Shown here piece by piece: positions 1-20,745 of a stretch of DNA of 64,000 bases. The DNA is taken from the NCBI GenBank assembly GCA_004431415.1, contig QPMI01000651.1, positions 62,001 through 126,000 of the forward strand, read 5' to 3'. The stretch's first letter is position 1; each line of letters starts with the position of its first letter. The notes beneath the pieces are model-generated. The model saw only the letters and a program-made list of their open reading frames with translations. It searched no databases and was not told the DNA's origin. The stretch is from Cyanophora paradoxa CCMP329 (Eukaryota; Plantae; Glaucophyta). Both the position numbers and the translations under genes were made by a program.

Positions 1-3000
1 CGCGTGCGCTTGCCTTTCGGGACATTTATTTTCACCCGATCGCGATTTTGACAACGCGTGCGCAGGACGGCGTCTGGTTCGAAAATTCGCTCTTGCAATG
101 CTGAAGAGCTCGAGCTCGCGATGTAACTGACCCGGTTTCCAGGTTCACGATTCCCACAAATGTCGCCGACAACGTCAACAGCGCGGTGGTACTCCTTCCT
201 GACGAAATCAAGGCGAGCATTTCTAGAAGTATAGATGCGTAGAATTGAGCGTGCACATGTCATTTCTGACTGGTACGCGGGCAGAGATTCGTGCCGAAGG
301 ACGGGAACGACGGCACGTATAAATATTGATCGAATTTTGACTCGTTACCGTCTGCACACTAATCGAACCTGAGCAGGTTTCGCCGTTTCGGTCCTCACGA
401 TGAGCAAGCCTCCCTTCGCGCCGGTCTACAAGGGGCCCGCAGGTGCTGTCGTGGGCACCGCTCGCATTTCCGGCCTCTTCGTGGACATTACGGTCCTGGG
501 CGTCCCAATTTCCGGCATCAACCCGGAGTTTCCCATCATCATTGAGGTGGGCGCACGGCTGGTTTTCAGTGGATCGCTGCAATTGTTCGGTTCCTGACGC
601 GTGGAACGCATACAGATTCCCTACGCCCAGGGAGTCGAGAGGCCGACGAAGCAGCAGGTGCGGTTTCAATGTCGCCAGATGCAGGGTAACACAGTGGGCG
701 CTCATTTTCGCACGGCTGATCGCGTCTGTTGTTATGTAGTACCTGCTCTTCTGGAACGGTGCGGTTGCATTTCGTCTTTCCTTCGCTCCGATGAGAGCTC
801 TCTAATCGAATCACCGCAGTGACATCGGAGAGCTGGGAGCCGTGCGACCCCTACGGCACGGGTCTCAACATGGCGGTGAGCTTTGGGCGTCGTCTAAGTC
901 GAAAGCTCGTTCACTGAAACATTTCACTGAAAGCTCGGCGATCCCAACGTCATCACGCGTGGCTCCGGCGACGTGCGTGCCCATTCAGCCTTCCGGAAGT
1001 ATAACGCTGAAAAAGTTTTCGCGATGCAGATCTTCTTCAAGGACGGCACCTACTACGCCCGCGGCCGCTGCACGCACCTTACGACGTTCACCGTCGGCGA
1101 GATCGAGCTGAACACCTTCAAGTCGAACGTGCCCGCTCTCGGCTCGGCGATCGGCAACGGCAACATCGCGCCGCCCGACCACGAGACCTCGAAGAGCAAC
1201 AACAGCCAGGTCCGCGTCCGCCGGCGCCCGCCCCTCTCGGACGCGCCCGTGTTCGAGCCCGGGCCCGGCGCCGCGCAGCTGGCGTTCATCCTCCCGCTCG
1301 CGTTCGGCATCGGCGGCGTGGCGCTGCTCCTCACCGGCCTCGCCGTCGCCAAGGCCAAGGGCGTCCTCCCGAGCTGGGGGCCCAAGTCCTCCTCGCCCTA
1401 CACCCCGTACTCCGGCCCCGAGCCCGGCGCCGGTGCCGGCGCTGGTGGCAACCCGTTCAACCCGCCGCGCAACGTGGGCGCGTTCCCGTCGCCGGACCAG
1501 CCGGGCGGCACCACCGTCACGTGGAGCAAACCAGAGACCGCCAGCTCGAACCCTCCCTCGCAGTACGAGGCGAGCGGCGCTTTTCACCCAAGCGCCGATC
1601 AAAGCTCTGCTGACACGCGCCGCAGATCTGGTCGTCCGACCCCAGCGGCCGCCCCGGCAGGAAGCTCGGCTCCGTCCCCGCGGACAGGCTCAGCTACACC
1701 CTCCCGGCGGCCCTCGCCGGCGTGCCCATCATCGTCCGCGCGGTCGACCCCGGCGGCCGCTTCGCTGACGCGCCGCCCGTCTCGCCCGACCCCGCCGGGG
1801 CGCCGGCCGCCCTGCTGCCGGGCCGTTCGACCCGCGCAACGTCCGCTCCATGCCCGCCAGCGAGCCCGCCCCGGCGAGCCCGCCCCGGCCCCGTCCTCAC
1901 GTGGAGCCCGCCCGAGGCCGCCAGCTCCGGCGCCGAGCCCGTCGCCCAGTACCAGGTCGGTGCCGCATGCGCGCAGCGGAGGCGCCCGGGGCCGAACTCG
2001 AGGCTTTGCTGACGCGGTTGGTTCGCGCAGGTGTGGGCTGCCGACCCCGCGGGGCGCCCCTCGACCCTCCTCGGCACCGTCCCCGGCGACGCGCTCTCCT
2101 ACGTGCTCCCGACCGCCGCCGGCGCCGTCGGCGGTGCTTTCGTCGTTCGCGCCCTCGGCAAGTCCGGCCGCAGCGGCGAGAGCGGCCCTATCTCGGGCCG
2201 CCCCGCCGCCGTCGACGCGGCTGCGGCGCCGGCCCGCGACGCCCCGTCGAACCTGCAGCTGACGAGCGTGACCTCGGGCATGCTCGGCGGCACCAGCGGC
2301 CGCCTCAGCTGGGGCCGCCCCGCCGCCGGCAACCCCGCCCAGTACCTCGTGCTGCAGGACGGCAAGCCCCTCGAGGGCGTGGCCGGCGACCGGACCTCCG
2401 CGCCCGTCTCCGACCTGCCCCGCGACCGCCCGGCGGTCTTCCAGGTCGTGCCCCTCGACGAGCGCGGCGCAGCCGGGACGCCCTCTTACCCGCTCACGGC
2501 CGGCCTGGCGAGCGACCCGAGCTCCGGCATCAACCTCACCGCCGCGCCCGCCAACCGCGACGCCTCCAGCGCCCTCCTCGCCTGGAGCGCCCCGTCTGCC
2601 GCCGCCGCCGCCGGCCTCGCCGCGTACTCGGTCCTCGCCGACGGCCGCGAGATCGCTCGCGTGCCCGCCACCGGCGCCGGCACGACGTCCTACGTCGCCC
2701 GCGGCCTGCCGCGCGGCTACGAGACCCGCTTCTCCGTCGTGCCGCTCTCGTCGCTCGGCGGCCCCGCCGGCCCCGCGTCGGACGTCGTCCCGCTCAGCCT
2801 CGCGCCCGGCAGCCCGGCCTCGACCGCGCCGACCGACCTGCAGCTGACCAACGTCTCGACCGGCATGATGGGCGGCAACTCGGGGACCCTCAGCTGGGCC
2901 CCGCCCAAGTCGGGCCCCGTGCAGTCGTTCGTCGTGCTGCACGACGGGCGGGTGGCCGGGCAGGTGCCGGCGCGGGAGAGCAGCCTCGCCCTCACGAACC

Positions 3001-4840
3001 TCGACGACCGCGACACCAGCGTCTTCTCCGTCATCCCGATCTACGCGAACTCCGTCGCCGGAGTCGCCTCCGCCCCCCTCTACGCCGGCATCCCCGCGAA
3101 CCCGGGCGCCGGCATCACGCTCACGGCCGCCCCGGCTTCGGGCTCGAGCGCCCGCCTGTCGTGGAACCGGCCGCGCGGCGGCGGCGCCTATGGCCCCATT
3201 TCGCAGTGCGTGATGCGTTCTTTGCGGGCGTTCGCTTGGATTGTCTTGTCTTGCCGATTGATCTCGGGCGTGCAGGTACGGCGTGCTCCGCAACGGGCAG
3301 CAGATCGCGACGGTGCCGGCGTCGGGCGCCGACATGAACACGTTCGTGGCCTCGGGCCTCCAGCCGAACTCGACCTCGGTCTACTCCGTCGTGCCCCTGT
3401 CGCCGTCCGGCAGCCCGAGCGGCCCCGGCAGCGCGAACGTGCCTGTGCAGGCCCCGCTCTCCTCGTACGGATTCGACGGCGCTGGCACTCCGTTCGCCGG
3501 CCGCGGTGGCGTCGCCCCATCGCCCCCCTCGAACCTGCAGCTGACGGGCATCTCGGCGGGCGGCATGGGCGGCGCCTCCGGCACCCTCTCGTGGAGCCGC
3601 CCGGCCTCGGGCGCCCCCGAGAGCTACCAGATCCTCATGAACGGCGCTCCCGCCGGCTCTGTCTCGGGCGGCAAGACCTCGGTCACCGTGTCCGACCTGC
3701 TGGTCGGCGGCATCACGAGCCTCAGCGTCGTCCCCGTCGGCGCCGGCGGCGTGCGCGGCGCGGAATCGGCTCCGCTCGTCGCCGGCATCCCGTCGGACGC
3801 GGGCTCCGGCATCGCGCTGACGGCGGCGGCGGCCGGCGCCTCGAGCGCCCGCCTCGCGTGGACCCGCCCGCGCGGCGGCGCCTACGGCCCGATCTCGCAG
3901 TGCGTGTGAATTGCATTCGCGGCCCGCGAAATGCGTCGCCCGCGACTCGCCCCTCACTGGACCGCGTTGTCGCAGGTATGCCGTCTTCAGCAACGGCCAG
4001 CAGATCGCGACCGTCCCGGCGTCGAGCTCCGCCCTGACCACGTTCACGGCGAACAACGTGCAGCCCGGCGCCGCCTTCTCGGTCGTGCCGCTCACGGCGG
4101 CCGGCGAGGCGAGCGGCCCCGGCAGCCTCGACGTCCCGCTCTCGGGCTCCGGCGGCGCCGGCCTCGGCGCCCCGTCGGCCCCCTCGAACCTGCAGCTGAC
4201 GGGCGTCGACTCGGGCCTCATGGGCGGCACCTCGGGCACCCTCTCGTGGAGCCACCCGGCCTCGGGCGCCGTTGAGAGCTACCAGGTCCTCATGAACGGC
4301 GCCGCGGTCGGCACCGTCTCGGGCGGCAAGACCTCGATGAGCGTCTCGGACCTGCCGCGCGGCGGCGTCGCGAACCTGAGCGTCGTGCCCATCGGCGCCG
4401 GCGGCGTGCGCGGCGCGGCGTCGACCCCGCTGTACGCCGGCATCCCGTCGGACCTCGGCGCGGGCATCGTGCTGACGGCGGCGGCGGCCGGCGCCTCGAG
4501 CGCCCGCCTCGCCTGGACCCGCCCGCGCGGCGGCGCCTCCGGCTCCGTGTACCAGTGCGCCGAACGGTTTTCGAGGGCTCGCGCCACGCCGGGGCTGACG
4601 CATCGGCTGTTTCGCGCGTGCAGGTACGGCGTGCTCCGCAACGGGCAGCAGATCGCGACGGTGCCGGCGTCGGGCGCCGAGACCAACGTGTTCACGGCGA
4701 CCGGCGTGCAGCCCGGCTCCGCCTTCTCTATCGTGCCCCTCTCGGCGACCGGCAGCCCGAGCGGCCCCGGCAGCGTTGAGGTGCCTCTGTCGATGACTGG
4801 AGGCGGTCGGCAGACTTTCACATCCGGATCCTTCTACTAG
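1..4840 (+). CDS. 3' part (5' end outside window) of giant single-pass receptor, copy A: GPS motif, TM, cytoplasmic FN3-like repeats; multi-exon
   Basis: Spliced exons give YLLFWNVTSESWEPC...YARGRCTHLTTFTVGE (GPS HL|T, 1069-1089) and a TM LAFILPLAFGIGGVALLLTGLAVAKAK (~1279-1358). These are followed by repeats of PSNLQLT..G.MGG.SGTLSW..P....Y.VL.NG. Stop TAG ends at 4840. Near-identical to the reverse complement of 7092-11962. Confidence 0.8.
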
Positions 4841-5140
4841 ATCAATTGCAACACTCTATACCTTAGCTAGCAATTGCAAACCTAGAGCAATTGTGTTCTT
4901 TCGACGCTTTCGTAAACGTTTATCGTATAGCTAGATCTATCACTTTAGCTAGAGTCGCATGTTTGGCTGACCGCCGACGCCGGACTCAAGATCTAGAGCA
5001 GCATATTCGAGTTCAAATAAAGCTCGGAGCATGTGCGACTTGTATGAGCCTCAGAGCAGCATGTCCGAATAAAGCTAGCGCTAGTAGGTTGTTAAAGATA
5101 GCCCGACCAGACAATTTTGTAATGAATCCGAACTGGCATG
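1..5140. repeat. Left arm of large inverted duplication (extends beyond window start)
   Basis: Position 1 pairs with ~11962 and the stop codon at 4840 pairs with 7092. The 3' flank 4983-5100 (gagcagcat...aataaag, twice) pairs with ~6785-6890. Confidence 0.95.
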
Positions 5141-6739: not shown

Positions 6740-9700
6740 GTCCATTTCGAAATCGTCCGGCAAGCTATAGCTACGAGTCCTACGACAACCTGACTAGCGT
6801 TCATTTATTCGGATATGCTGCTCCGAGGCTCATCATAGTCGCACGTGCACATGCGCCGAGCTTTATTCAGATATGCTGCTCTTGAGTCAGTCGCACATGC
6901 GATTCTGGCAAGTTTCTATAGCTGGCAAATAGTGCGAAATTGTCGAAAGTACATAATTGCAAGGGCTAGACGTTGCAAGGTCCGATATATAGCGACAAGG
7001 CACGTCAATCTAGATCTGAAACAGTACCATGCACCTCAAATTACCTCTGTAGACTAGTTGCGCTAACAAGCTATACCATGCTGCAATTGATCTAGTAGAA
7101 GGACCCAGACGTGAAAGTCTGCCGGCCGCCACCAGTCATCGACAGAGGCACCTCAACGCTGCCGGGGCCGCTCGGGCTGCCGGACGGCGACAGGGTCACG
7201 ATCGAGAAGGCGGAGCCCGGCTGCACGCCGGTCGCCGTGAACACGTTGGTCTCGGCGCCCGACGCCGGCACCGTCGCGATCTGCTGACCGTTGCGGAGCA
7301 CGCCGTACCTGCACGCGCGAAACAGCAAATGCGTCAGCCCCGGCGTGGCGCGAGCCCGCAAAAACCGTTCGGCGCACTGGTACACGGAGCCGGAGGCGCC
7401 GCCGCGCGGGCGGGTCCAGGCGAGGCGGGCGCTCGAGGCGCCGGCCGCCGCCGCCGTCAGCACGATGCCCGCGCCGAGGTCCGACGGGATGCCGGCGTAC
7501 AGCGGGGCCGACGCCGCGCCGCGCACGCCGCCGGCGCCGATGGGCACGACGCTCAGGTTCGCGACGCCGCCGCGCGGCAGGTCCGAGACGCTCATCGAGG
7601 TCTTGCCGCCCGAGACGGTGCCGACCGCGGCGCCGTTCATGAGGACCTGGTAGCTCTCAACGGCGCCCGAGGCCGGGTGGCTCCACGAGAGGGTGCCCGA
7701 GGTGCCGCCCATGAGGCCCGAGTCGACGCCCGTCAGCTGCAGGTTCGAGGGGGCCGACGGGGCGCCGAAGCCGGCGCCGCCGGAGCCCGAGAGCGGGACG
7801 TCGAGGCTGCCGGGGCCGCTCGCCTCGCCGGCCGCCGTGAGCGGCACGACCGAGAAGGCGGCGCCGGGCTGCACGTTGTTCGCCGTGAACGTGGTCAGGG
7901 CGGAGCTCGACGCCGGGACGGTCGCGATCTGCTGGCCGTTGCTGAAGACGGCATACCTGCGAAAACGGAGGCCAGTGAGAGGCGAGTCGCGGGCGACGCA
8001 TTTCGCGGGCCGCGAATGCAATTCACACGCACTGCGAGATCGGGCCGTAGGCGCCGCCGCGCGGGCGGGTCCAGGCGAGGCGGGCGCTCGAGGCGCCGGC
8101 CGCCGCCGCCGTCAGCGCGATGCCGGAGCCCGCGTCCGACGGGATGCCGGCGACGAGCGGAGCCGATTCCGCGCCGCGCACGCCGCCGGCGCCGACGGGG
8201 ACGACGCTGAGGCTCGTGATGCCGCCGACCAGCAGGTCGGACACGGTGACCGAGGTCTTGCCGCCCGAGACAGAGCCGGCGGGAGCGCCGTTCATGAGGA
8301 TCTGGTAGCTCTCGGGGGCGCCCGAGGCCGGGCGGCTCCACGAGAGGGTGCCGGAGGCGCCGCCCATGCCGCCCGCCGAGATGCCCGTCAGCTGCAGGTT
8401 CGAGGGGGGCGACGGGGCGACGCCGCCGCGGCCGGCGAACGGAGCGCCAGCGCCATCGAATCCGTACGAGGAGAGCGGGGCCTGCACAGGCACGTCCGCG
8501 CTGCCGGGGCCGCTCGGGCTGCCGGACGGCGACAGGGGCACGACGGAGTAGACCGAGGTCGAGTTCGGCTGGAGGCCCGAGGCCATGAATGTGTTCATGT
8601 CGGCGCCCGACGCCGGCACCGTCGCGATCTGCTGACCGTTGCGGAGCACGCCGTACCTGCACGTCCGAGATCAATCAGCAAGACAAACAAAACAAGCCAA
8701 GCGAACGCCCGTGAAAAAAACATCGCGCACTGGGCAATAGGACCATAGGCGCCGCCGCCGCGGGGCCGGTTCCACGACAGGCGAGCGCTCGAGGCCGAAG
8801 CCGGGGCCGCCGTGAGCGTGATGCCGGCGCCCGGGTTCGCGGGGATGCCGGCGTAGAGGGGGGCGGAGGCGACTCCGGCGACGGAGTTCGCGTAGATCGG
8901 GACGACGGAGAAGACGGTGGTGTCGCGGTCGTCGAGGCTCGTGAGGGTGAGGCTGCTCTCCCGCGCCGGCACCTGCCCGGCCACCCGCCCGTCGTGCAGC
9001 ACGACGAACGACTGCACGGGGCCCGACTTGGGCGGGGCCCAGCTGAGGGTCCCCGAGTTGCCGCCCATCATGCCCGTCGAGACGTTCGTCAGCTGCAGGT
9101 CGGTCGGCGCGGTCGAGGCCGGGCTGCCGGGCGCGAGGCTGAGCGGGACGACGTCCGACGCGGGGCCGGCGGGGCCGCCGAGCGACGAGAGCGGCACGAC
9201 GGAGAAGCGGGTCTCGTAGCCGCGCGGCAGGCCGCGGGCGACGTAGGACGTGGCGCCGGCGCCGGTGGCGGGCACGCGAGCGATCTCGCGGCCGTCGGCG
9301 AGGACCGAGTACGCGGCGAGGCCGGCGGCGGCGGCGGCAGACGGGGCGCTCCAGGCGAGGAGGGCGCTGGAGGCGTCGCGGTTGGCGGGCGCGGCGGTGA
9401 GGTTGATGCCGGAGCTCGGGTCGCTCGCCAGGCCGGCCGTGAGCGGGTAGGAGGGCGTCCCGGCGGCGCCATGCTCATCGAGGGGCACGACCTGGAAGAC
9501 CGCCGGGCGGTCGCGGGGCAGGTCGGAGACGGGCGCGGAGGTCCGGTCGCCGGGCACGCCCTCGAGGGGCTTGCCGTCCTGCAGCACGAGGTACTGGGCG
9601 GGGTTGCCGGCGGCGGGGCGGCCCCAGCTGAGGCGGCCGCTGGTGCCGCCGAGCATGCCCGAGGTCACGCTCGTCAGCTGCAGGTTCGACGGGGCGTCGC

Positions 9701-11962
9701 GGGCCGGCGCCGCAGCCGCGTCGACGGCGGCGGGGCGGCCCGGGATAGGGCCGCTCTCGCCGCTGCGGCCGGACTTGCCGAGGGCACGAACGACGAAAGC
9801 ACCGCCGACGGCGCCGGCGGCGGTCGGGAGCACGTAGGAGAGCGCGTCGCCGGGGACGGTGCCGAGGAGGGTCGACGGGCGCCCCGCGGGGTCGGCAGCC
9901 CACACCTGCGCGAACCAACCGCGTCAGCAAAGCCTCGAGTTCGGCCCCGGGCGCCTCTTCTGCGCATGCGCGCATGCGGCCGACCTGGTACTGGGCGACG
10001 GGCTCGGCGCCGGAGCTAGCGGCCTCGGGCGGGCTCCACGTGAGGACGGGGCCGGGGGCGGGCTCGCCGGGGGCGGGCTCGCTGGCGGGCATGGAGCGGA
10101 CGTTGCGCGGGTCGAACGGCCCGGCGGCAGGGCGACCGGCGCCCCCGGCGGGGTCGGGCGAGACGGGCGGCGCGTCAGCGAAGCGGCCGCCGGGACCGAC
10201 CGCGCGGACGATGATGGGCACGCCGGCGAGGGCCGCCGGGAGGGTGTAGCTGAGCCTGTCCGCGGGGACGGAGCCGAGCTTCCTGCCGGGGCGGCCGCTG
10301 GGGTCGGACGACCAGATCTGCGGCGCGTGTCAGCAGAGATCTAAATTAAACGGCGCTTGTGAAGCAATCGCCGCTCGCCTCGTACTGCGACGGGGGGTTG
10401 GAGCTGGCGGTCTCGGGTTTGCTCCACGTGACGGTGGTGCCGCCCGGCTGGTCCGGCGACGGGAACGCGCCCACGTTGCGCGGCGGGTTGAACGGGTTGC
10501 CGCCAGCGCCGGCGCCGGCGCCGGGCTCGGGGCCGGAGTACGGGGTGTAGGGCGAGGCGGACTTGGGCCCCCAGCTCGGGAGGACGCCCTTGGCCTTGGC
10601 GACGGCGAGGCCGGTGAGGAGCAGCGCCACGCCGCCGATGCCGAACGCGAGCGGGAGGATGAACGCCAGCTGCGCGGCGCCGGGCCCGGGCTCGAACACG
10701 GGCGCGTCCGAGAGGGGCGGGCGCCGGCGGACGCGGACCTGGCTGTTGTTGCTCTTCGAGGTCTCGTGGTCGGGCGGCGCGATGTTGCCGTTGCCGATCG
10801 CCGAGCCGAGAGCGGGCACGTTCGACTTGAAGGTGTTCAGCTCGATCTCGCCGACGGTGAACGTCGTAAGGTGCGTGCAGCGGCCGCGGGCGTAGTAGGT
10901 GCCGTCCTTGAAGAAGATCTGCATCGACAAAAGCCTTCATCATTATAATATTAATTCCGGAAGGTTGAACGGGCACGCACGTCGCCAGACCCGCGCGTGA
11001 TGACGTTGGGATCGCCGAGCTTTCAGTGAAATGTTTCAGTGAACGAGCTTTCGATTTCGACGACGCCCAAAGCTCACCGCCATGTTGAGACCCGTGCCGT
11101 AGGGGTCGCACGGCTCCCAGCTCTCCGATGTCACTGCGGTGTTTCGATTAGAGAGCTCTCATCGATATCGAAAGACGAAATGCAACCGCACCGTTCCAGA
11201 AGAGCAGGTACTACAATAACAACAGACGCGATCAGCCGTGCGAAAATTAGCGCCCACTGTGTTACTCTGGCGACAATGAAACCGCACCTGCTGCTTCGTC
11301 GGCCTCTCGACTCCCTGGGCGTAGGGAATCTGTATGCGTTTCACGCGTCAGGAACCGAACAATTGCAGCGATCCACTGAAAACCAGCCGTGCGCCCACCT
11401 CAATGATGATGGGAAACTCCGGGTTGATGCCGGAAATTGGGATGCCCAGGACCGTAATGTCCACGAAGAGGCCGGAAATGCGGGCGGTGCCCACGACAGC
11501 ACCTGCGGGCCCCTTGTAGACCGGTGCGAAGGGAGGCTTGCTCATCGTCAGGACCGAAACAGCGAAACCTGCTCAGGTTCGATTAGTATGCAGACGGTAA
11601 TGAATCATAGCTATAGCCAAATTTGATCAATATTTATACGTGCCGTCGTTCCCGTCCTTCGGCACGAATCTCTGCCCGCGTACCAGTCAGAAATGACATG
11701 TGCACGCTCAATTCTACGCATCTATACTTCCGGAAGCGCTCGCCTTGATTTCGTCAGGAAGGAGTACCACCGCGCTGTTGACGTTGTCGGCGACATTTGT
11801 GGGAATCGTGAACCTGGAAACCGGGTCAGTTACATCGCGAGCTCGAGCTCTTCAGCATTGCAAGAGCGAATTTTCGGACCAGACGCCGTCCTGCGCACGC
11901 GTTGTCAAAATCGCGATCGCGATCGGGTGAAAACTAAAATTTCCGTAAACAAAGCGCACGCG
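6740..11962. repeat. Right arm of large inverted duplication
   Basis: Reverse complement of 1-5140. Exons are nearly identical; introns are more diverged. Confidence 0.95.
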
Positions 11963-14900
11963 GTCGGGGGGATCAGGGAAGCAGACTGTACGCCGCAGAA
12001 GGCGCACTCAGTGTCAGCAATGTGAGGGAATGCAAATAATCTCAAATGTGCATGTGGACGCACTCTTGCCAGCAGTCTGATGTTAAAAACGTCCAAGGAC
12101 GCGCGTCAGGAATATATATATAATTGTGCCGGATGTTTGTTCTATTATTGCGTATGCGCACCAGTGCAGCCTCTTCAGCGGCGTTCCTCTTCATACCGTC
12201 GCCGCACGGCATGCAGCTGGGAGTTGAGTCAAGTGAGCGGTTTGCGATCGGACGATCGTGATGATGAATATTCAAAACTTAAGTACAGACGTGCGCTCGA
12301 CGCACCCGGATCGCGCCTTGATGAGGTTGCTGAGGACGTCCTTCAGGGGAGAGGAGGTTCCTTTGCCGGCTGTGGCGTCCAGGCCGGTTGCCGTGCTCGG
12401 CGTCCAGCTGTCGGAGGCGATAGCGCTCGACATCGTAGCGGCCGCCTGCGGGTGCGGGCGCCGCCCCGGGCCAGGGCGGTGAGATCGCGCTCCGCGCACC
12501 CCGACTCGAATGCATCACGCACCCCGCCAAGCATCTCGGCGAAGCGATCCGCAGGGATCGAGCAGGGATCAAAGTCGGGGTAGCATCCGTACAGGAGTTG
12601 CTCCGCTGAGTAGCTGCGGAAACACGCAACGGCAACGTAAGCAAACCCCCGTAAATCGCTGGATCGAGGGCGGTGCAATTACTTCAGATATCTGCACGAG
12701 GGCGAAGATCAAGGGCAAATCACAATGCTAATTCGACGTTTCGCACTTGGCAACGAGGCGGGAAAAGGCGCGGATGGTGCCGATGGCGGGGGCCGCCTCC
12801 GCGTATGAGGTGCCGTTCATGTCCTTCGTCGCCGCGCACGTGTCCCGCAGGAGCGCGTCGCTCAGGGCCTTCGCGCACTCCGACTTGCCCGGGTTCGCTG
12901 TGGGGCACTTCAAGGTGTCCGAACACACTACGACGGGACCAGCGCACCCGCGTCCTCCTCGAGCAACTGGCTCGTGACGGCCGAGACGGCCTGCAGGATG
13001 CTCTGGTCGTACTGCTTCTTGGTGATGGCGCCGGCGGCGAGCTTGGCGTCCAGGTCCGCCTTCCGCTTCCTGTACAAGTCGCACGCGGAGCCAGCCGGCG
13101 GTGAGGCGACGGTCGCGCTCGTCTGGCAGTCTGCGGGCCGCGGCAAGCGATCGCCAGCCAGGCTTCAGTCTTCGAAAGCTATAGAAGGTTCGTTGAAGGC
13201 AAACGCGGAAGGCACCGGCGCAGCTGCGCTCCTTGTCGCAGATGGTGATGACGAGGGGGACCTGGCCGACGGGGAAGGAGAGCTCCGCGAACGAGCCGCT
13301 GTACTGCGTGGGCGCCACCGGCAGGCCGTTGCGCTGCGCGCGGCGCGGTTCAGACTCGAAAGTCCAGCGAAATCACATGCCGCGGCCGGCCTCGGCATCC
13401 TCACCTTGAGGGTGTAGGAAAGGGGGAGCGTGTCGTTGTCCGAGACCGTCCAGCCCTCGGCCGTCACAGTAAATGTATCCTAAAGGCGAGTTTTAGAGCT
13501 GAAACACCCTCCGTATCTACAGTATCTAGCCATGGTTGAGTATCTAGCCGTTCTCAGTATCTAGCCATGGTTGAAGGCACCTGAAGAAGGATGCCATTCG
13601 CGGGCGTGACGGAGCACTTGCCAGGCTTGGGAGGGCCAATGAGGCTGTGAAGCGAGGTCACCGAGCAGCTTAATCGGATTTCAACGAATTCGAAGAGTTA
13701 CCGGACGCGAATCTCGTCGAACACAACCTCATCTTGCGGAGCGTTCGGGTACGATGCCACGCAGCGCTGCGCAACGCGGATGATTGTGAGCACAAAAGCG
13801 ATGCACTGTTTCAATCAGAACGTCTCGCTCACAAGAAGGTACAGCTTATCTGCGAGTTGAGCAATGAGCGAACATGCATCGATGCGCGTATACGAGGCTC
13901 ACCGTAAACCAGCTTGGGGCGCTTCTCGGGGCTGAAGACCATGAAGTTCTCCGCCTTGTTGGCGCCCGCGTTGAGGTAGGTGAGGATCTCCGCGAGCTCG
14001 GGCTCCTTGTTCGGCGCGACCCACGACATGACCGCCACGCTCGGCCAGCCTGCGACCCGGTCAGAAGCCGCCGTTCGCGGGTGCGGGACGTTCTCGAGAT
14101 TTTAGATCTAGATCGCGCACTGGGGTCGGGGTCGACGCGGGAGCGGCAGCGCATGGTCAGCGTCTTGGAGTCGGTGAGCTTGGTGGGGTCCTTGAGGCTG
14201 GAGGTCTCCGTGTCGATCTTCACGACGGGGAGAACCTTGTCGAGGACGTTGATGGTGATCGAGGTGGTGTCCTCGGCCCAGCCGGCCCCCGGGCAGGTCG
14301 AGTTCACGCGCAGGTAGAGCGTGTACGACTTGCCGAACGCGAAGTTGGCTGCGCGCGACGAAAGCACACAACGTAAATTTTCAAAAACGCGGCTACATAT
14401 ATAGTCGATCGGATTGCCGCGGGACGCACGGATGGCGGGAGCAGGGGCCGGCGCGGTGCTGGTGGCGAGCGGGACCGTCTTCTTGTCGGCGCCGAAGGCG
14501 GTCTCGAAGAGCACGGTCGAGGCGCCGTCGAAGGGCTCTCCCTTCGGCACGAGCCGCCACTGGTACTCGTACGTAGCGGTCTTCGAGCAGGATGGGTTGT
14601 ACGATCTAACGCGAGCGCCAGCGGTGAGACACGCTGCGAGCGCTAGCATTTGACTTCAGGGATGCTTACGGGGAGCCGTCGACGACGAAGGATGCATCGC
14701 GGCCGACGCTGCGGTCGCCTCCAGCGATGGTCGCGGTGAGGACGGTGGGCAGTCCGTCCGCGCCGGGGGGAGGGCGGGGCGCGGGCGTCGGAGGAACGGG
14801 TGTCGGCCCCGTCGCTGGAGGAATCGGCGACGGCGTCGGTGTCGGAGGAGCCGCGCAATACGGAATCACGGCCTGGAACGCCACCGAGTTCTCCTGGAAG

Positions 14901-17900
14901 CCGCCGAACTTGTTGAAGGCCCGAAGGTACGTGCGGTACCACTTGCCGCAGACGAATCCCTCGACGGGGCAGCTCGGGCTCATGTCGTTCGTCATCGCCG
15001 CGCCGGCCTCTCCCTTCGCGACGCCGTCCACGGTGCAGATGCGCTTCACGTGATCGCGCGTGGCGGACGGCGCGTTGGCGGTCGAAGAAATCTGCGTTCA
15101 ATCGCATCAATTCGTTAGCGCGTACGTGTGTGGAATACCAATCGACGGATGTCCCATTGCCAACCTCAAAAATGGTGAGACTGTAGCCAACGGGAGTGAG
15201 CCCAGTCGCGGGATTTGTCCAGCCAGCTGATGGATGCATATGGTTCAGCGTTACCAACCAAGTAAAGGCTTGAGCAGATCCAAGCACGCCCACCGGTCAG
15301 GCCAGTCATCGTGACCGGAGGCGCGACAAATCTGTAGGGGTCCTTGAAGCCGAGGATGTCGGCCCTCCTGAAGCCCATGGCAAACTGAAGAAAGGAAAAG
15401 TTTGAGTTGGCCTTCCGGAGTCCATGAACGAGATCTCGAAATGCATCGATTCTGGGCGGAGGCTATAGCTACGTATACTCACCCCGATGCTGACAGCGTC
15501 ACCAGACTCCAGCCAGCCGCCATTCCGCTGACCGAAGGAGAACCAGACCTGACCAGAACCAGAATCAACGGTCGAGCTCGGCAACGGGGCAGCGCGATCG
15601 CATATGAGGGCAGACCCCAATCACGCTATCCGCGGCGGCGGTCGCTCCAACGTTTACTCCAAGGTAAGGGTTTGCAATCGGATCCCTGATCTTCTCATTG
15701 AAGGTTCTGGTTGCAAGGGGTGTTAGCGCAACGAAAAACGCCACATGTCGCTTAGACACTACTGCAAGCGACGAACCGGGTTCCAACAGAGTCGACAGCC
15801 GCATTCGAGTATCCGACGCGCGCCCTGACGTCTTCGGCCACGTATCCGATTTCGCAGCGCTCTGTGCTCGCTCTAAGCGCGAATGCATTCCGATTCTTTT
15901 CTTTGCCTTATAGTTACCTGCCACGATTCCCGAGGCAATGTTTCCCGCAACGGTGCCGGACGCCCCGGTGTAGGTGGAGCCCGCGGGCTGGGCCAGGATC
16001 TCGTTCTTCGTCTCTACGAACACGCGCACGAGTTAGCCCCACCTCTACGATGAAGATATTGAGATCCATCGCGCCGAGAGATCAACAAAACTTTGCGATT
16101 CTATCTCTAACGCGTGAAATTACCGAAGAAATCTTTGGTAGCCCAGTTTAAGTCTATTGCTTCGTACTCTTGCTTGCCCGGCCCCCAGTAATCAGTCGCA
16201 TCCGCGTCATTGGCGTTCACCTTGTCTGAGACGAGCACGAGGCAGAACCAGGTTATGAAAGCAACAAAGGAAATTACTGCTTTAACATCTCTTCCTGCTC
16301 ACCGGCTCTCCAAGCCCCCAAATTCTCTAGATCGGAATACCTGCCGGCAGCTGTGCGCGACTGCCCCTGATCTGCGGAGTGGTTTCAAGTTCAAATGCAT
16401 TAGTATTTGTTCGTGCAAGTGGATCTAGATCTTCAGCATCCGCAAACCCGGATCGATGTCGCGAACTGCACGGAACGGACCACTCAGATGAGAGGGCAAG
16501 CTGTTTTCCATCACACGATTTCGAGTAGAAGTGACTGACCGTAGTATGGAAGCTGCGTCGCCGGAGATCCGTCGCCGTTGCGAATCACGACGTTCACGTA
16601 GACTGCAAAATAATGTCCGTGCAATGCTTTCAGTGCAAAATACGAATATGGGCGATGGCGAAACTGGCTGTTCTCGCGGCGGCGCACTCATCATGTCAAG
16701 CGGCGGCGTCTGGTCATCCGTGTTGAAGAAGTACCTGCAGTCGGAGAATTCGAACGCAATGAACAGGCGGCCTCGTATATATGCAAGCCGACAGCTGCGG
16801 AGCGTGGGCAACGCACGTGTGCTCTACGGAAATGTTGTTGACTGGGTGGAAGGCGCGGTGGACGACGGTTACGCCGGTCGAATCTGTGGCCCTGCTGACG
16901 ATTGTGCCGTTCAGGGCAGCCCTGTTGAGCTGGCCCGGTGCGATCTCTCGGGACGCTCCGGCGTTCTGGAATTCGTCTGCTCCGAGCTTCACGCCCCATC
17001 TGCCAAAGAAAATTGAATTTAATTTTTCGCCGCGCGTTTTACATATATAAGTATACCATAACGCACCCCTCGAACTGCATGTGCGCGGAGCAAGTAAGCA
17101 ATTACCCGCGAAATGCGTGTGAGTGCGCAATTCGAAGTAAAGTCCGTGCAAATGACGAATTCGAACTCGAACGTACCGGCAAGCCTCTGATAATCCACAA
17201 AAGCACGCATTCAAAAGTTTCGTGAGATCATGCCGCAGACTGCTAAAACGAGCACTTATTATTATGTAAAATTTGCGCACGGGATAAAGTAGTCGCTGCG
17301 AAAGCAACGGTCAGTCTTCCGCCAAACGGAAGCAGAATTGCGCAAGGCTTTGACATGGAGGACCAGGCGCACCCGCAGTAAGCTATCTGCTGGCCCGTCT
17401 CCTGAGAGCCTTCGATGTAGTCATCGGTCGCGGGCCAAGAATTCCATCTTCGCCACGTGAGCCCAGGGAATGCGACGCGTGCGCACGATCGCAAGCTGCG
17501 AACCCGTCCTTGTCGACGTCGACCATCAAGCCGACCGCGCTGTGGCGCATTGCCGTGTATCCGCGGGGCCTGCGAATTCCCGCGGGCCGTTCGGCAAGGC
17601 CTTTACAATCGTACGCGTAGTGCGTGCTCGTACCAGGAATCCGGGGGGAGGCTGAGGGTGCCCAAGCTTCCCTCGTTGTCGTGGATGGCCGTGAGGATGT
17701 ACTTCGTGACCTGCGAGGGTCGCCGTGCGCGTCACGGATCATCGGATTGCACTTGCACTTGAATTCGAAGCAAGCTTAAGGTATCTGTCATCAAGCGTCT
17801 CACTATGTACGTGTCGCCGGTGGTGGTTCCCCCGACAGCGATGTCTTTCGCTAGATACGCCCCGGGCTCTGGAAGGGACACCGCGAGGTTTCCGCGGATT

Positions 17901-20745
17901 TCAAACAACGGGCTGCGATGCGGGTGGAGGGAATAAATATACTGATGAGAACCGATGGTCGTGGGCGCTTGATTGCCCGCGGGAGCCGCGCTCGCACCGA
18001 GAGAAGAAGTAGGTCTGCCGAGTTACGTACGCCTCGTCCGCGTTCCAGACCGTGGCGCCACCGCGGTCACCGTTGTACTTCGACGGGTGCTGCGCGACGT
18101 CGAGGCAGGCGTTGTAAGGCTTAAGAACTGAGGCATATTCGAGATTGAATGACATATACCGAAAACATGAGTTCGCCCATGCTCTGTCAAGATTGAAAAT
18201 CGCGAACGGGTCAGAACAGAGATCGATATAAAGGGATTGACGCGTGGAAAGCGCATACGTGACCCAACCAGCGTCTGAGGGCCGAGTATATACGCAAATA
18301 TCAGCCTGCTATATCGATATCGCATTGGAGAAGTTTTCAAAGACGCACGGAAACATGCTGCCGCCTTGGGGGCGAGGGGGGCCGTCAGCCGAAGACTTTG
18401 CGGGACTAGAAGCTTAAAATCACGAACCCACGAGCGGCTTGTAGGAGGCCACGTTAGCGCACTCTTCGGGGGCGCAGCCAGGTCGGGGTTGATTCAAGTT
18501 CGGTCTCTTCCCCAGGAAATTCATGAGTCCGACCTGGCGGTCGCTCCCAGCCGAGTTTCCGAAACCCCAGGCTGAGGAGAACCAGACTCCGTGCGTGTGC
18601 ATCCCGCGCATGTCGTTGGCGTCAGCGCCATCGAGCCCGTAGGAGTTCATCGCCATCTACGGAAAACACATCGAGCGTTCGCAATCGCATTCCTAAGTCT
18701 GAAAACTCCAGGTAGATAAATTACTCACACTGAAGAGCTTGCCATCTGTCCTATTGATCCTGAGGCACCACTGCGGGTCCATTCAACATCGTCACAGGTA
18801 CAGAAATCATTCAGGACCAACGCACCCCCTCATTAAGTGTGATGGGTGCCTGCAAAGGATTATTAATATTTCTACTGCGGAAAGAGCAATTGAAACCGCA
18901 TAATCACCGAGCACTGAGCGTACACGTCGAGGGTGTTTGTGGTCGTCCACCGATCCGCCGTATTCACAGACACGTCCGCTGGAATAAGTGCGATTGGATT
19001 CGTCATCATAAATATAATCTGAAGTTCGTAGGGCGAAGAAACTGTAATTGCAAACCACAATGCGCGATGAGTGGATAGCTCCGAGGGGTAACCTACAGCC
19101 GCGAGCAAAGCGATGTGTGCACAAGCATGCGGTATTTTTTCATAATTAGATATCTTTGAGACACGCACGTCAAGAGGGAACGGCCAAGGCCGGCCAGACT
19201 CGGTGTTCTTTTTAGGCCTAGTAAACCGCACGAACGAAACCTGCATCCAGAAATGTAACAAAAGGCTCATTTACAGGTTCCCCGTATATTTAAAGTTCAC
19301 CTGGTAGGTCGCTGCCTCGTCTGTTGCCACGAACCCGGACCCGTCTGCGGGCTCCTTAAAACCGAGCTTGCCAGTCGGGTAGTACATGGTCCAGTAAACC
19401 TGCGCGCAGGCCCGCCAGGCAAAATTCAGCATCGCCGACTGCGCACTCGTGTACGCATGAGCTCGACCAGCGCACACTGGAGACGTTGACGGGAATATTG
19501 GTATACGTCTGAGGCGCGTTTAAAATATTTCGATTATGCAGGAGATCAAGCACGAAACTAGCTCACCTGGCACCTACGCGGAAATTACGTATACGTATAC
19601 CGTTAATCAGTAGTCAAAACAATTGCAACAGTTTAACTTGTATGGTCAAGAAAACTCGCACCAAAACCTGTAATTAAAATAAATTCACATCAGCTTGGCA
19701 TGCATGCGGAATTGACGCGCAATTGCAAATCGACTCACCAATCCCGTTGCGGGCCACGCTGCCAGGACTGAAGAGTGCACCCGCTGCCAATCACCGAAGG
19801 ATTGTTGGTGCTGTCAGTGCTACACCTATACGAACGCATTGCTCCATCCTTGATCGTTTGCACGGCTCGATAGAACGTGCCCCCCGTGCCTGTTATGGTC
19901 CTTGCAGTCTTCAAAGATCTCGATTCAGAGGATTGAATGATTCACAATTGCAAACGCAACTTCGAGATCGTACCTCAACGGCCCAGGTACCTGGTTTCGA
20001 AGAAACCAAAGAATTGGGTCCAATTATCAATACATAATGTCTGCAAGCTCATGCATGATCATACCGATGTATCCTTTGCCGTTAGCATTGGTGAGAGTTG
20101 TGCTGTCCGTCCCGCTTCCATCCGTTCCCGTAGTCCTGCAAAATTGTACATTTCGCTTGTTAGATCTTTCAACGCGCACCCGCGCGAAGAGGATCGTGCA
20201 CGTGCGCACCCCGTAGCCAACGTGTAGGTGGACAAAATGGCTTCCGATTGCACACGTACGCGTCATGGTCAATGCCAGCATGACGCACGCAAGGGCATGC
20301 TGTGATCAAATGCGTATCAATCACCTTTCGTTCCGGGTAGGCCGGTGGAATTCATCAAATGCGGCCGCCCTTGGACGCCGCTCCGACCTACCGACGCTTC
20401 GGTTTTAATGGCGGTGCCGGCGCGCGCGCGCGCAAGCGACAGTCGAGCAGCGCGCGGACCCATGTCCTTGGCCTGCTTCTCGGGGCCGGTCTTGGGAGTA
20501 CTGGTGGTTGAGTTGGTGCTGTTGTCCTCCAGGAGGTGCCTACGCTCGACGACGACATCGCCTGGCAAACCAACTTCCGACCGCAACTTCTCCGGGTGCA
20601 CTCCAGAGCTCGTGGGCAGGCTCTCCACCGCGAAGGCCGCCCAGCTGCAGGTCGCCACGAAGACGGCAGCAACGGCTAGCGCGAGCAGGTGCCAGCGCAA
20701 TCCGCGGTCGACTGACGGCCGCAGCGCCTGGCCGCTCCGCGCCAT
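7092..20745 (-). CDS. Giant multi-exon type I membrane protein, copy B: signal peptide, large unknown ectodomain, FN3, Pro/Thr linker, REJ, GAIN/GPS, 1 TM, ~10 cytoplasmic FN3-like domains
   Basis: ATG at 20745 gives MARSGQ...WHLLALAVAAVFVATCSWAAFA (signal) and an RRHLLE processing-like motif. Exons with GT/GC-AG borders run on the minus strand down to 7092. REJ-like motifs: LTATIAGGDRSV...VVDGS.SYNP (~14760-14590) and PPKPGKCSVTPANG..DTFTVTAEGW...PLSYTL (~13640-13405). CTHLTTF at ~10858-10880, TM at ~10600-10670. Continuity of the 15.4-20.7 kb exons with the rest is inferred from same strand and no evident intergenic gap. Confidence 0.7.

Follow-up and report, generated by a model that had tools for sequence, protein, structure and literature searches.

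A single-pass REJ and GPS-like membrane protein with a fibronectin type III tail, predicted from a many-exon locus of the glaucophyte Cyanophora paradoxa

Most known REJ and GAIN/GPS modules belong to polycystins of animals, to sperm receptors and to adhesion G-protein-coupled receptors (GPCRs), and protists supply scattered cases. The GAIN domain is a fold of about 320 residues that consists of a helical subdomain A and a beta-sandwich subdomain B in which the GPS strands are embedded. The GAIN paper traces these modules "from Tetrahymena to mammals" (PMC3321182), and the sea urchin proteins SpREJ1, SpREJ8 and SpREJ9 combine REJ and GPS with a single transmembrane (TM) helix (PMC1934368). In this study, a window of 64,000 nucleotides from Cyanophora paradoxa CCMP329 was analyzed (contig QPMI01000651.1, positions 62,001 to 126,000; coordinates below are those of this whole stretch), and its minus strand from approximately 15708 to 7092 was found to carry more than 30 short exons that encode a single domain series. 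We assign a probability of roughly 0.58 to the reading that these exons form one many-exon gene for a type-I single-pass protein of the PKD1/REJ kind with a tail of ten fibronectin type III (FN3) domains.

The order of the domains (REJ, GPS-like region, one TM helix, FN3 array) is supported as real as far as sequence and gene models show, and it is present in a single public model of a C. paradoxa paralogue, P0003 (tig00000131_g7474), which carries REJ, the same GPS motif, the same TM helix and FN3 repeats. Beyond this, we infer that the exons are joined in one transcript and begin with a signal peptide, and also how the protein is oriented, where it is cleaved and what it does; the autoproteolysis and the adhesion or mechanosensory role suggested in the earlier note are likewise putative. 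The public EukProt set of C. paradoxa contains two proteins of contig tig00021532 that are encoded within the window, P0004 (g22185) and P0001 (g22184). P0004, with 1229 residues, matched ten minus-strand exons between 11545 and 7095 residue for residue (100% identity) and runs unbroken from the beta subdomain through the GPS and the TM helix to the tenth FN3 repeat. Exon models were obtained with a dynamic program that scores codon bias and splice signals and was guided by P0003, and the queries for similarity and fold searches were single exons or the public proteins P0001, P0003 and P0004. In linked tblastn alignments and the exon model, the exons from 15708 to 10918 were colinear with P0003 and contained zero stop codons, and the stop codon of the gene was placed at 7092..7094 of the minus strand. 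By composition, the window is GC-rich eukaryotic DNA; the GC content at third codon positions (GC3) marked the minus-strand exons sharply from about 15100 to 7092, and the signal was patchy farther upstream. The introns of the resolved part measured 61-160 nucleotides, with donors of the GTGCG type and CAG acceptors, and these short introns fit the mean of 86 bp reported for the C. paradoxa genome (PMC6704402). An Rfam scan gave zero matches. The predicted protein would have roughly 2000-2250 residues, for which the word giant, used in the earlier note on this DNA, was an overstatement.

The REJ domain was modelled at 13205..14605 of the minus strand in exons at about 14605-14430, 14348-14121, 14049-13910, 13766-13702, 13644-13581, 13479-13381 and 13333-13205, on the basis of the exon model and colinearity with P0003. 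These exons were 41-56% identical to P0003 and colinear with it (linked tblastn, E=4.6e-53), and residues 298-543 of P0003 matched the Pfam REJ model (PF02010) with E=1.3e-21 and 77 bits against a cutoff of 25. Moreover, two adjacent exons of the window matched adjacent positions of the REJ profile (313-330 and 332-354, with E values of 0.14 and 0.0085). In a protein-language-model comparison (score 0.89, 193 shared features), the P0003 ectodomain had as neighbours REJ(+GPS) clusters of ciliate, rotifer and euglenozoan proteins. Through the score of the paralogue and the identity of the window exons, a REJ domain as defined for the PKD1/REJ family is predicted in this protein.

The region between REJ and the membrane has a predicted GAIN-like layout, helical at first and beta-rich thereafter. 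Exons 13122-12948, 12897-12747, 12613-12523 and 12445-12306 (12306..13122, minus strand) encode a helical, Cys-containing region like GAIN subdomain A, as judged from homology to P0003 residues 532-703. Micro-exons at 11569..12216 of the minus strand are expected to encode the first half of the beta subdomain; in this interval the guided exon search yielded two that are supported by the paralogue (12216-12162, CMPCGDGMKR; 11671-11644, RFVPKDGND) and left the remainder ambiguous. The rest of the beta subdomain and the opening half of the GPS motif lie at 10981..11568 of the same strand, and the exact map of P0004 and the splice sites place them in exons 11568-11399, 11329-11288, 11210-11192 (YLLFWN) and 11134-11078 (VTSESWEPC...). 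An optional exon of 39 nucleotides at 11019-10981 is skipped by P0004, matches 'LGDPDDPKKPGD' of P0003 and leaves the frame intact whether or not it is included. From comparison of P0004 and P0003, the motif ends at 10865..10918 (minus strand) with IFFKDGTYYARGRC-T-H-L-T, and the predicted scissile bond is situated between the Leu codon 10870-10868 and the Thr codon 10867-10865. The complete GPS-like motif, FWN..W..C...C-T-H-L-T-T-F, is split over the micro-exons 11210-11192, 11134-11078 and 10918 onward; as spliced in P0004, it is assembled from ...YLLFWN, VTSESWEPCDPYGTGLNMA and IFFKDGTYYARGRCTHLTTFTV, and it is nearly identical in P0003. Within the window, the core C.HL[TS].F occurred in the two gene copies only, and 0.005 matches were expected per shuffled window.

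The GPS of latrophilin has the disulphides C834-C820 and C832-C801 and is cut between L837 and T838 (PMC3321182). The motif described here keeps the His-Leu-Thr sequence, two Trp residues and the Cys pair equivalent to latrophilin C820-C834, one Cys following the second Trp and the other standing two residues ahead of His; thus two of the four canonical Cys are present and both partners equivalent to C801-C832 are jointly absent, a pattern that would look as expected for a true but simplified GPS. The features that define the GPS in the PKD1/REJ family (Trp, Cys and HL-T before the first TM helix) are recognizable in the predicted protein with this reduced Cys set. The HL-T sequence and the following strand TTFTVG were identical in P0003, P0004 and P0001, despite an identity of 47-55% around them. 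The motif (FWN-x5-W-x2-C ... C-T-H-L-T-T-F) stands about 65-70 residues ahead of the TM helix here and 18 residues ahead of it in P0003. The outer stalk between HL-T and the helix carries an insert of about 50 residues relative to P0003, with a polybasic RVRRR sequence at about 10700-10720 (minus strand), which is a possible second cleavage site of the kexin/furin type. From this context, we consider the region a likely, still putative GAIN domain.

The single TM helix, LAFILPLAFGIGGVALLLTGLAV, was located at 10601..10669 of the minus strand (P0004 residues 172-194) with a Kyte-Doolittle (KD) value of 2.29 over 23 residues, and it is followed by AKAKG. No second TM helix was found in P0004 or P0003, the other hydrophobic peaks of P0004 (1.6-1.7) being FN3 strands, and no ectodomain exon reached KD 1.7; consequently, extra helices that would place the FN3 repeats on the REJ side were found neither in P0004 nor in the ectodomain exons. 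On the FN3 side lies the juxtamembrane motif P-Y-x-P-Y-x-G (10532..10549, minus strand), with Y153, P155, Y156 and G158 invariant in a five-member alignment. The TM core ILP.AFGIG..LL..G and this motif, about 18 residues later, are both invariant across the five family members, which hints at packing between helices and, on the FN3 side, at a signal for docking or sorting. In the exon model, 19 Cys are encoded between 15690 and the TM helix and none in the tail. Furthermore, each aligned paralogue has Lys or other basic residues after the helix, and the REJ and GPS modules studied so far are all extracellular (PMC3321182; PMC1934368). Because of the positive-inside rule, the distribution of Cys and the extracellular position of REJ and GPS in characterised proteins, the REJ side would face outward and the FN3 tail would be cytoplasmic, and we infer a type-I membrane protein with a candidate signal peptide.

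The tail (7095..10498, minus strand) comprises 10 FN3 or FN3-like repeats, namely two of C type and four A/B pairs, and a short end (...TSGSFY), as established from Pfam fn3, alignments and the P0004 map. Its minus-strand exons run to 10379 or 10385, from 10317 or 10281 to 9982/9985, and then over 9905-8731, 8656-8033, 7955-7378 and 7308-7095. The tail is 1035 residues long and Cys-free, and 54% of it is Gly/Ala/Ser/Pro. The repeat consensus is NPF.PRNV...W..PE...YE/IW for the C type, APSNLQLT... for the A type and GI.LTAA...RNGQQIATVP... for the B type. Pfam fn3 (PF00041) matched the twin model P0001 with E=1.7e-31 and, when single repeats were scanned, seven of the 10 (repeats 3 and 5-10) with E values from 1e-4 to 1e-2. 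Repeat 4 aligned with the B-type repeats, repeats 1-2 were linked to the others by hhalign alone (72% probability, E=3e-5), and some repeats weakly matched a RIMBP2-like Ig model in Pfam. By these matches the tail is predicted to consist of fibronectin type III domains. At the DNA level, the units of the array have diverged too far to register as tandem repeats, and none were found. Two splices are conceivable after the first FN3 half. The GT-AG intron of the public model, at 10384..10282, deletes a conserved FN3 strand; the alternative GC-AG intron at 10378..10318 was preferred because it retains the 'YE-IWSSDPSGRPGR' strand conserved in repeat 2 and P0003. Both splices are in frame, so the coding sequence continues from the TM helix into the FN3 repeats with either intron. 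The Pro/Thr stalk, REJ, the GPS signature, one TM helix followed by AKAK and about ten FN3-like repeats after it had all been proposed in the earlier note; the first four were present by homology to P0003, the P0004 map and hydropathy, and Pfam fn3, alignments and hhalign gave the repeats a count of 10.

The paralogues indicate how far this layout extends. An exhaustive phmmer search with the GPS-TM exon through 1.84 billion representatives returned P0001 and P0003 only, besides P0002, which was set aside as a low-complexity repeat artefact. P0001 was 99% identical to the query and represents a cluster that includes P0004. A search of the ESM Atlas with the same exon gave no usable match. A word-index search with the tail retrieved one distantly similar, generic FN3 protein and nine additional proteins of C. 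paradoxa. Of these nine, P0012 and P0013 have the shared TM motif at their very start and FN3 arrays after it, so the order of TM helix and then FN3 characterizes the family; in none of the nine were these FN3 repeats found behind a signal peptide. The paralogues P0003, P0012, P0013 and P0006-P0011 share the ILP.AFGIG TM motif, PYxPYxG and FN3 repeats of the A/B types. Compared with them, the member described here is short (10 FN3 domains), has the stalk insert of 50 residues with RVRRR and belongs to an inverted pair. With searches of this sensitivity, the family seems confined to one lineage.

The second member of the pair, g22184 (P0001), occupies 1..4864 of the plus strand, where it is cut by the window start and lies tail to tail with the main gene. 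Window positions 1-4864 are the reverse complement of 11962-7068 with 96.1% DNA identity (blastn) across a spacer of 2.2 kb, 148 differing sites distinguish the two copies, and P0001 maps to 400-4837 of the plus strand. Both public models, g22185 and g22184, begin at the identical internal Met (11545 on the minus strand, 400 on the plus strand) in the middle of the beta domain. Over 1129 comparable codons of the GPS-TM-FN3 part, 38 synonymous and 20 non-synonymous changes separate the twins, which gives a ratio of non-synonymous to synonymous rates (dN/dS) of 0.20; because 72% of the sites are non-synonymous, about 42 of the 58 changes would be non-synonymous under neutrality. This ratio indicates selection on the coding sequence of the GPS, TM helix and FN3 array since the duplication and speaks for a functional coding sequence. 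At about 1797-1883 of the plus strand (corresponding to 10146-10058 of the minus strand), the twin has three deletions of 1 nucleotide that jointly restore the frame but garble about 30 codons where FN3 repeat 2 begins; the minus-strand copy shows no such damage. The deletions may reflect genuine decay or homopolymer errors in the assembly. Some contigs of the DNA runs of 2012 do not match the minus-strand copy exactly, in several cases over introns close to positions at which the twin differs, and they probably derive from the twin. If so, the inverted pair is not an artefact of long-read assembly.

Upstream of the REJ exons, one large exon at 14670..15091 (minus strand; coding score 72, homology to P0003 residues 115-234) encodes a Cys-containing beta module, a Pro/Thr stalk that is directly visible at about 14762-14854 and the first part of the REJ-like region (GGDRSVG). 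The beta module had been taken for an ectodomain FN3, and Pfam scans gave no family match for it. The most upstream exons supported by homology, which are beta-rich, lie at 15453..15708 of the minus strand and match P0003 residues 14-76 weakly (tblastn E 0.04-0.09). Ab initio exon chains upstream of 15708 were discarded, as two model runs disagreed and the coding scores were low. A candidate first exon at 20588..20745 (minus strand) is an open reading frame with a signal-peptide-like start, MARSGQ...HLLALAVAAVFVATCSWAAFA followed by VE, a hydrophobic peak of KD 2.23 and a candidate cleavage point between AFA and VE. The intervening 5 kb or so (15700-20600) has a lower GC content (0.5-0.55) and a patchy, weak coding signal, which is odd given the mean intron of 86 bp.

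Several results weigh against the reading as one gene for a GPS-bearing receptor, and part of them concern the gene itself. None of the RNA runs covered the stretch, and the four runs that did cover it (2012) were genomic contigs that span introns and hold no splice joints. The public annotation leaves the ectodomain exons unjoined to P0004, several exon paths were possible between 12161 and 11569 in the guided search, and two splices of the exon model have GC-AG ends (donors GCGAGC at 10378 and GCACGT at 11643); for the second, after exon 11671-11644, no frame-keeping GT alternative was found. The signal peptide of the earlier note does exist as an open reading frame at 20745, but it sits 5 kb ahead of the first exon with homology support (15708), across a stretch of weak coding signal. 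Together with the low coding potential upstream of 15100, the shared internal start of both annotated twins and the scrambled codons of one of them, these points raise the possibility that this is not one working gene, the ectodomain being decayed or separate, only a P0004-like product or none being made, or both twins being unexpressed relics of duplication. We regard this as unlikely, since the dN/dS of 0.20 covers the GPS, TM and FN3 exons, P0003, itself annotated as a single protein, is matched by over 25 colinear exons free of stops, and a product from Met 11545 would start in the middle of a beta domain without a signal peptide. Moreover, the homology to P0003 continues past this Met in the same exon (FAVSVLT-M...), so the annotated start of P0004 is an artefact, and the genome authors themselves stated that gene models need manual curation owing to many short introns (PMC6704402). 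The ectodomain (15708-11569) seems to be absent from the public proteome on weak searches: word-index protein searches with it, which consider at most 8000 candidates, returned P0003 alone or nothing, and because the same searches also missed known relatives, their blanks are given no weight.

The other part concerns the GPS-like region and the membrane topology. The Pfam GPS and GAIN models gave no match to the P0001, P0003 and P0004 proteins, to single open reading frames or to exons, and PDB sequence searches found nothing for the GPS region, whether the query was one sequence or a profile. Two AlphaFold runs on the GAIN-like region of P0003 gave mean predicted local distance difference test (pLDDT) scores of 46 and 39, values that are low because the alignments contained only about two distinct sequences. 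The better model had five helices (two with pLDDT >90) and then nine strands, the last of them after HL-T. With this low-confidence model, the top two Foldseek matches were the GAIN-containing proteins CELSR1 and CD97 at non-significant E values of 0.11 and 0.26, and VIA-align scored CELSR1, BAI3 and CD97 at Z 4.9, 4.6 and 4.2, below unrelated beta sandwiches at Z 6.4. Of the families and folds anticipated for this locus, REJ (through P0003) and fn3 were borne out by Pfam; for GPS/GAIN, Pfam gave no match and the structural comparison fell short of significance. That the GPS-like region is a non-cutting structural relic, and the protein an uncleaved adhesion or anchoring molecule, would accord with the presence of one of the two canonical disulphides, with the missing Pfam GPS match, with a stalk of 70 residues instead of about 20 in which RVRRR could serve another protease, and with the GAIN of BAI3, which can remain uncleaved (PMC3321182); we nevertheless hold it doubtful, because HLT and TTFTVG have stayed identical in P0003, P0004 and P0001 amid sequence of 47-55% identity. 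A reversed topology, with FN3 outside and REJ/GPS in the cytoplasm, would place FN3 where it is commonly found and would suit a tail that is poor in charged residues, rich in Ser-Pro/Gly like many surface proteins and provided with four NxS/T sequons, and the signal peptide is only a candidate. However, REJ and GPS lie outside the cell in every characterised protein (PMC3321182; PMC1934368), the Cys-rich and Pro/Thr-rich part precedes the TM helix with no Cys after it, and basic residues come after the helix in every paralogue. This orientation is very improbable in our judgement, as is a hydrophobic stretch that does not span the membrane, against which the KD value of the helix argues.

If the locus is one gene for a type-I single-pass protein, its outer part would carry, in order, the beta module, the mucin-like Pro/Thr stalk, REJ and a helical-plus-beta GAIN-like region that ends in the GPS, followed by the stalk of about 70 residues and a TM helix with a Gly-rich face conserved in the family. 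Inside would lie PYxPYxG, a Gly-rich linker and ten Cys-free FN3 domains with an extended span of about 35-40 nm. The ectodomain might bind an external partner or experience its pull; an active GPS would cut between Leu and Thr and leave the halves joined non-covalently, and force or shedding could then alter the state of the half anchored in the membrane. The chain of FN3 domains would serve as a tether or a docking scaffold toward cortical structures, such as the sub-plasmalemmal alveoli. Flattened alveolar sacs lie directly beneath the plasma membrane of C. paradoxa (PMC6704402), and a chain of 35-40 nm could, speculatively, reach them. The broader proposal, namely a glaucophyte family of self-cleaving REJ-GAIN receptors whose cytoplasmic FN3 chains are length-defined, titin-like tethers from the membrane to the alveolar sacs, is improbable as it stands. 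If this tether reading were true, it would describe a mechanical coupling device built of polycystin and fibronectin parts with no channel or GPCR module.

If the single-gene reading holds, the REJ/GPS cassette would be placed in Archaeplastida through a glaucophyte family, would work without a channel or seven-TM partner in the same chain and would provide a new case of intracellular FN3 domains. The locus also offers a concrete example of truncated public gene models in C. paradoxa. Furthermore, this compact member (10 FN3 domains, about 2000 residues) should be easier to clone and tag than the longer paralogues, which makes cleavage and topology practical to test.

A layout of REJ/GPS, TM helix and FN3 was not found in the literature searched, nor, among the papers listed, was any that combines Cyanophora paradoxa with fibronectin type III, and the C. 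paradoxa genome paper mentions neither fibronectin nor polycystin (PMC6704402). Like polycystin-1 and PKDREJ, the predicted protein has REJ and then a GAIN/GPS-like region directly before the first TM helix, with the HL-T motif; unlike them, it has one TM helix instead of eleven and one of the two GPS disulphides, and neither PLAT/LH2 after the first helix nor the channel-like last six helices were detected in P0004 or P0003 by Pfam and hydropathy. It shares with adhesion GPCRs (latrophilin, BAI, CELSR, CD97) the His-Leu-Thr sequence and a hydrophobic strand near the membrane, and the low-confidence AlphaFold model has the same helix-then-beta order. Unlike these receptors, it gave no 7tm Pfam match and has one hydrophobic helix, so a tethered-agonist mechanism would have no obvious receiver. 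Integrin beta4, titin-type proteins and RIM-BP use cytoplasmic FN3 domains as a scaffold or an elastic link, which is a functional analogy only: their ectodomains are unrelated, there is no sequence relationship beyond the FN3 fold, and no integrin family was matched in any Pfam scan.

The single-pass sea urchin proteins belong to an animal, whereas the present family belongs to the glaucophyte lineage. To our knowledge, no array of folded domains is known behind the TM helix in SpREJ1, SpREJ8 and SpREJ9. C-type lectin, EGF and PKD repeats were not detected at the locus by Pfam scans of open reading frames, exons and public models. As in SpREJ1, SpREJ8 and SpREJ9, a large REJ ectodomain and a GPS just before the only TM helix are predicted here with no channel module; unlike those proteins, for which the available part of PMC1934368 reports no folded array after the helix, the protein of C. 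paradoxa would carry 1035 residues with ten FN3 domains. The single-pass combination of REJ and GPS is already known, and the differences of this locus are the long FN3 array behind the TM helix, the lack of PLAT and the lineage.

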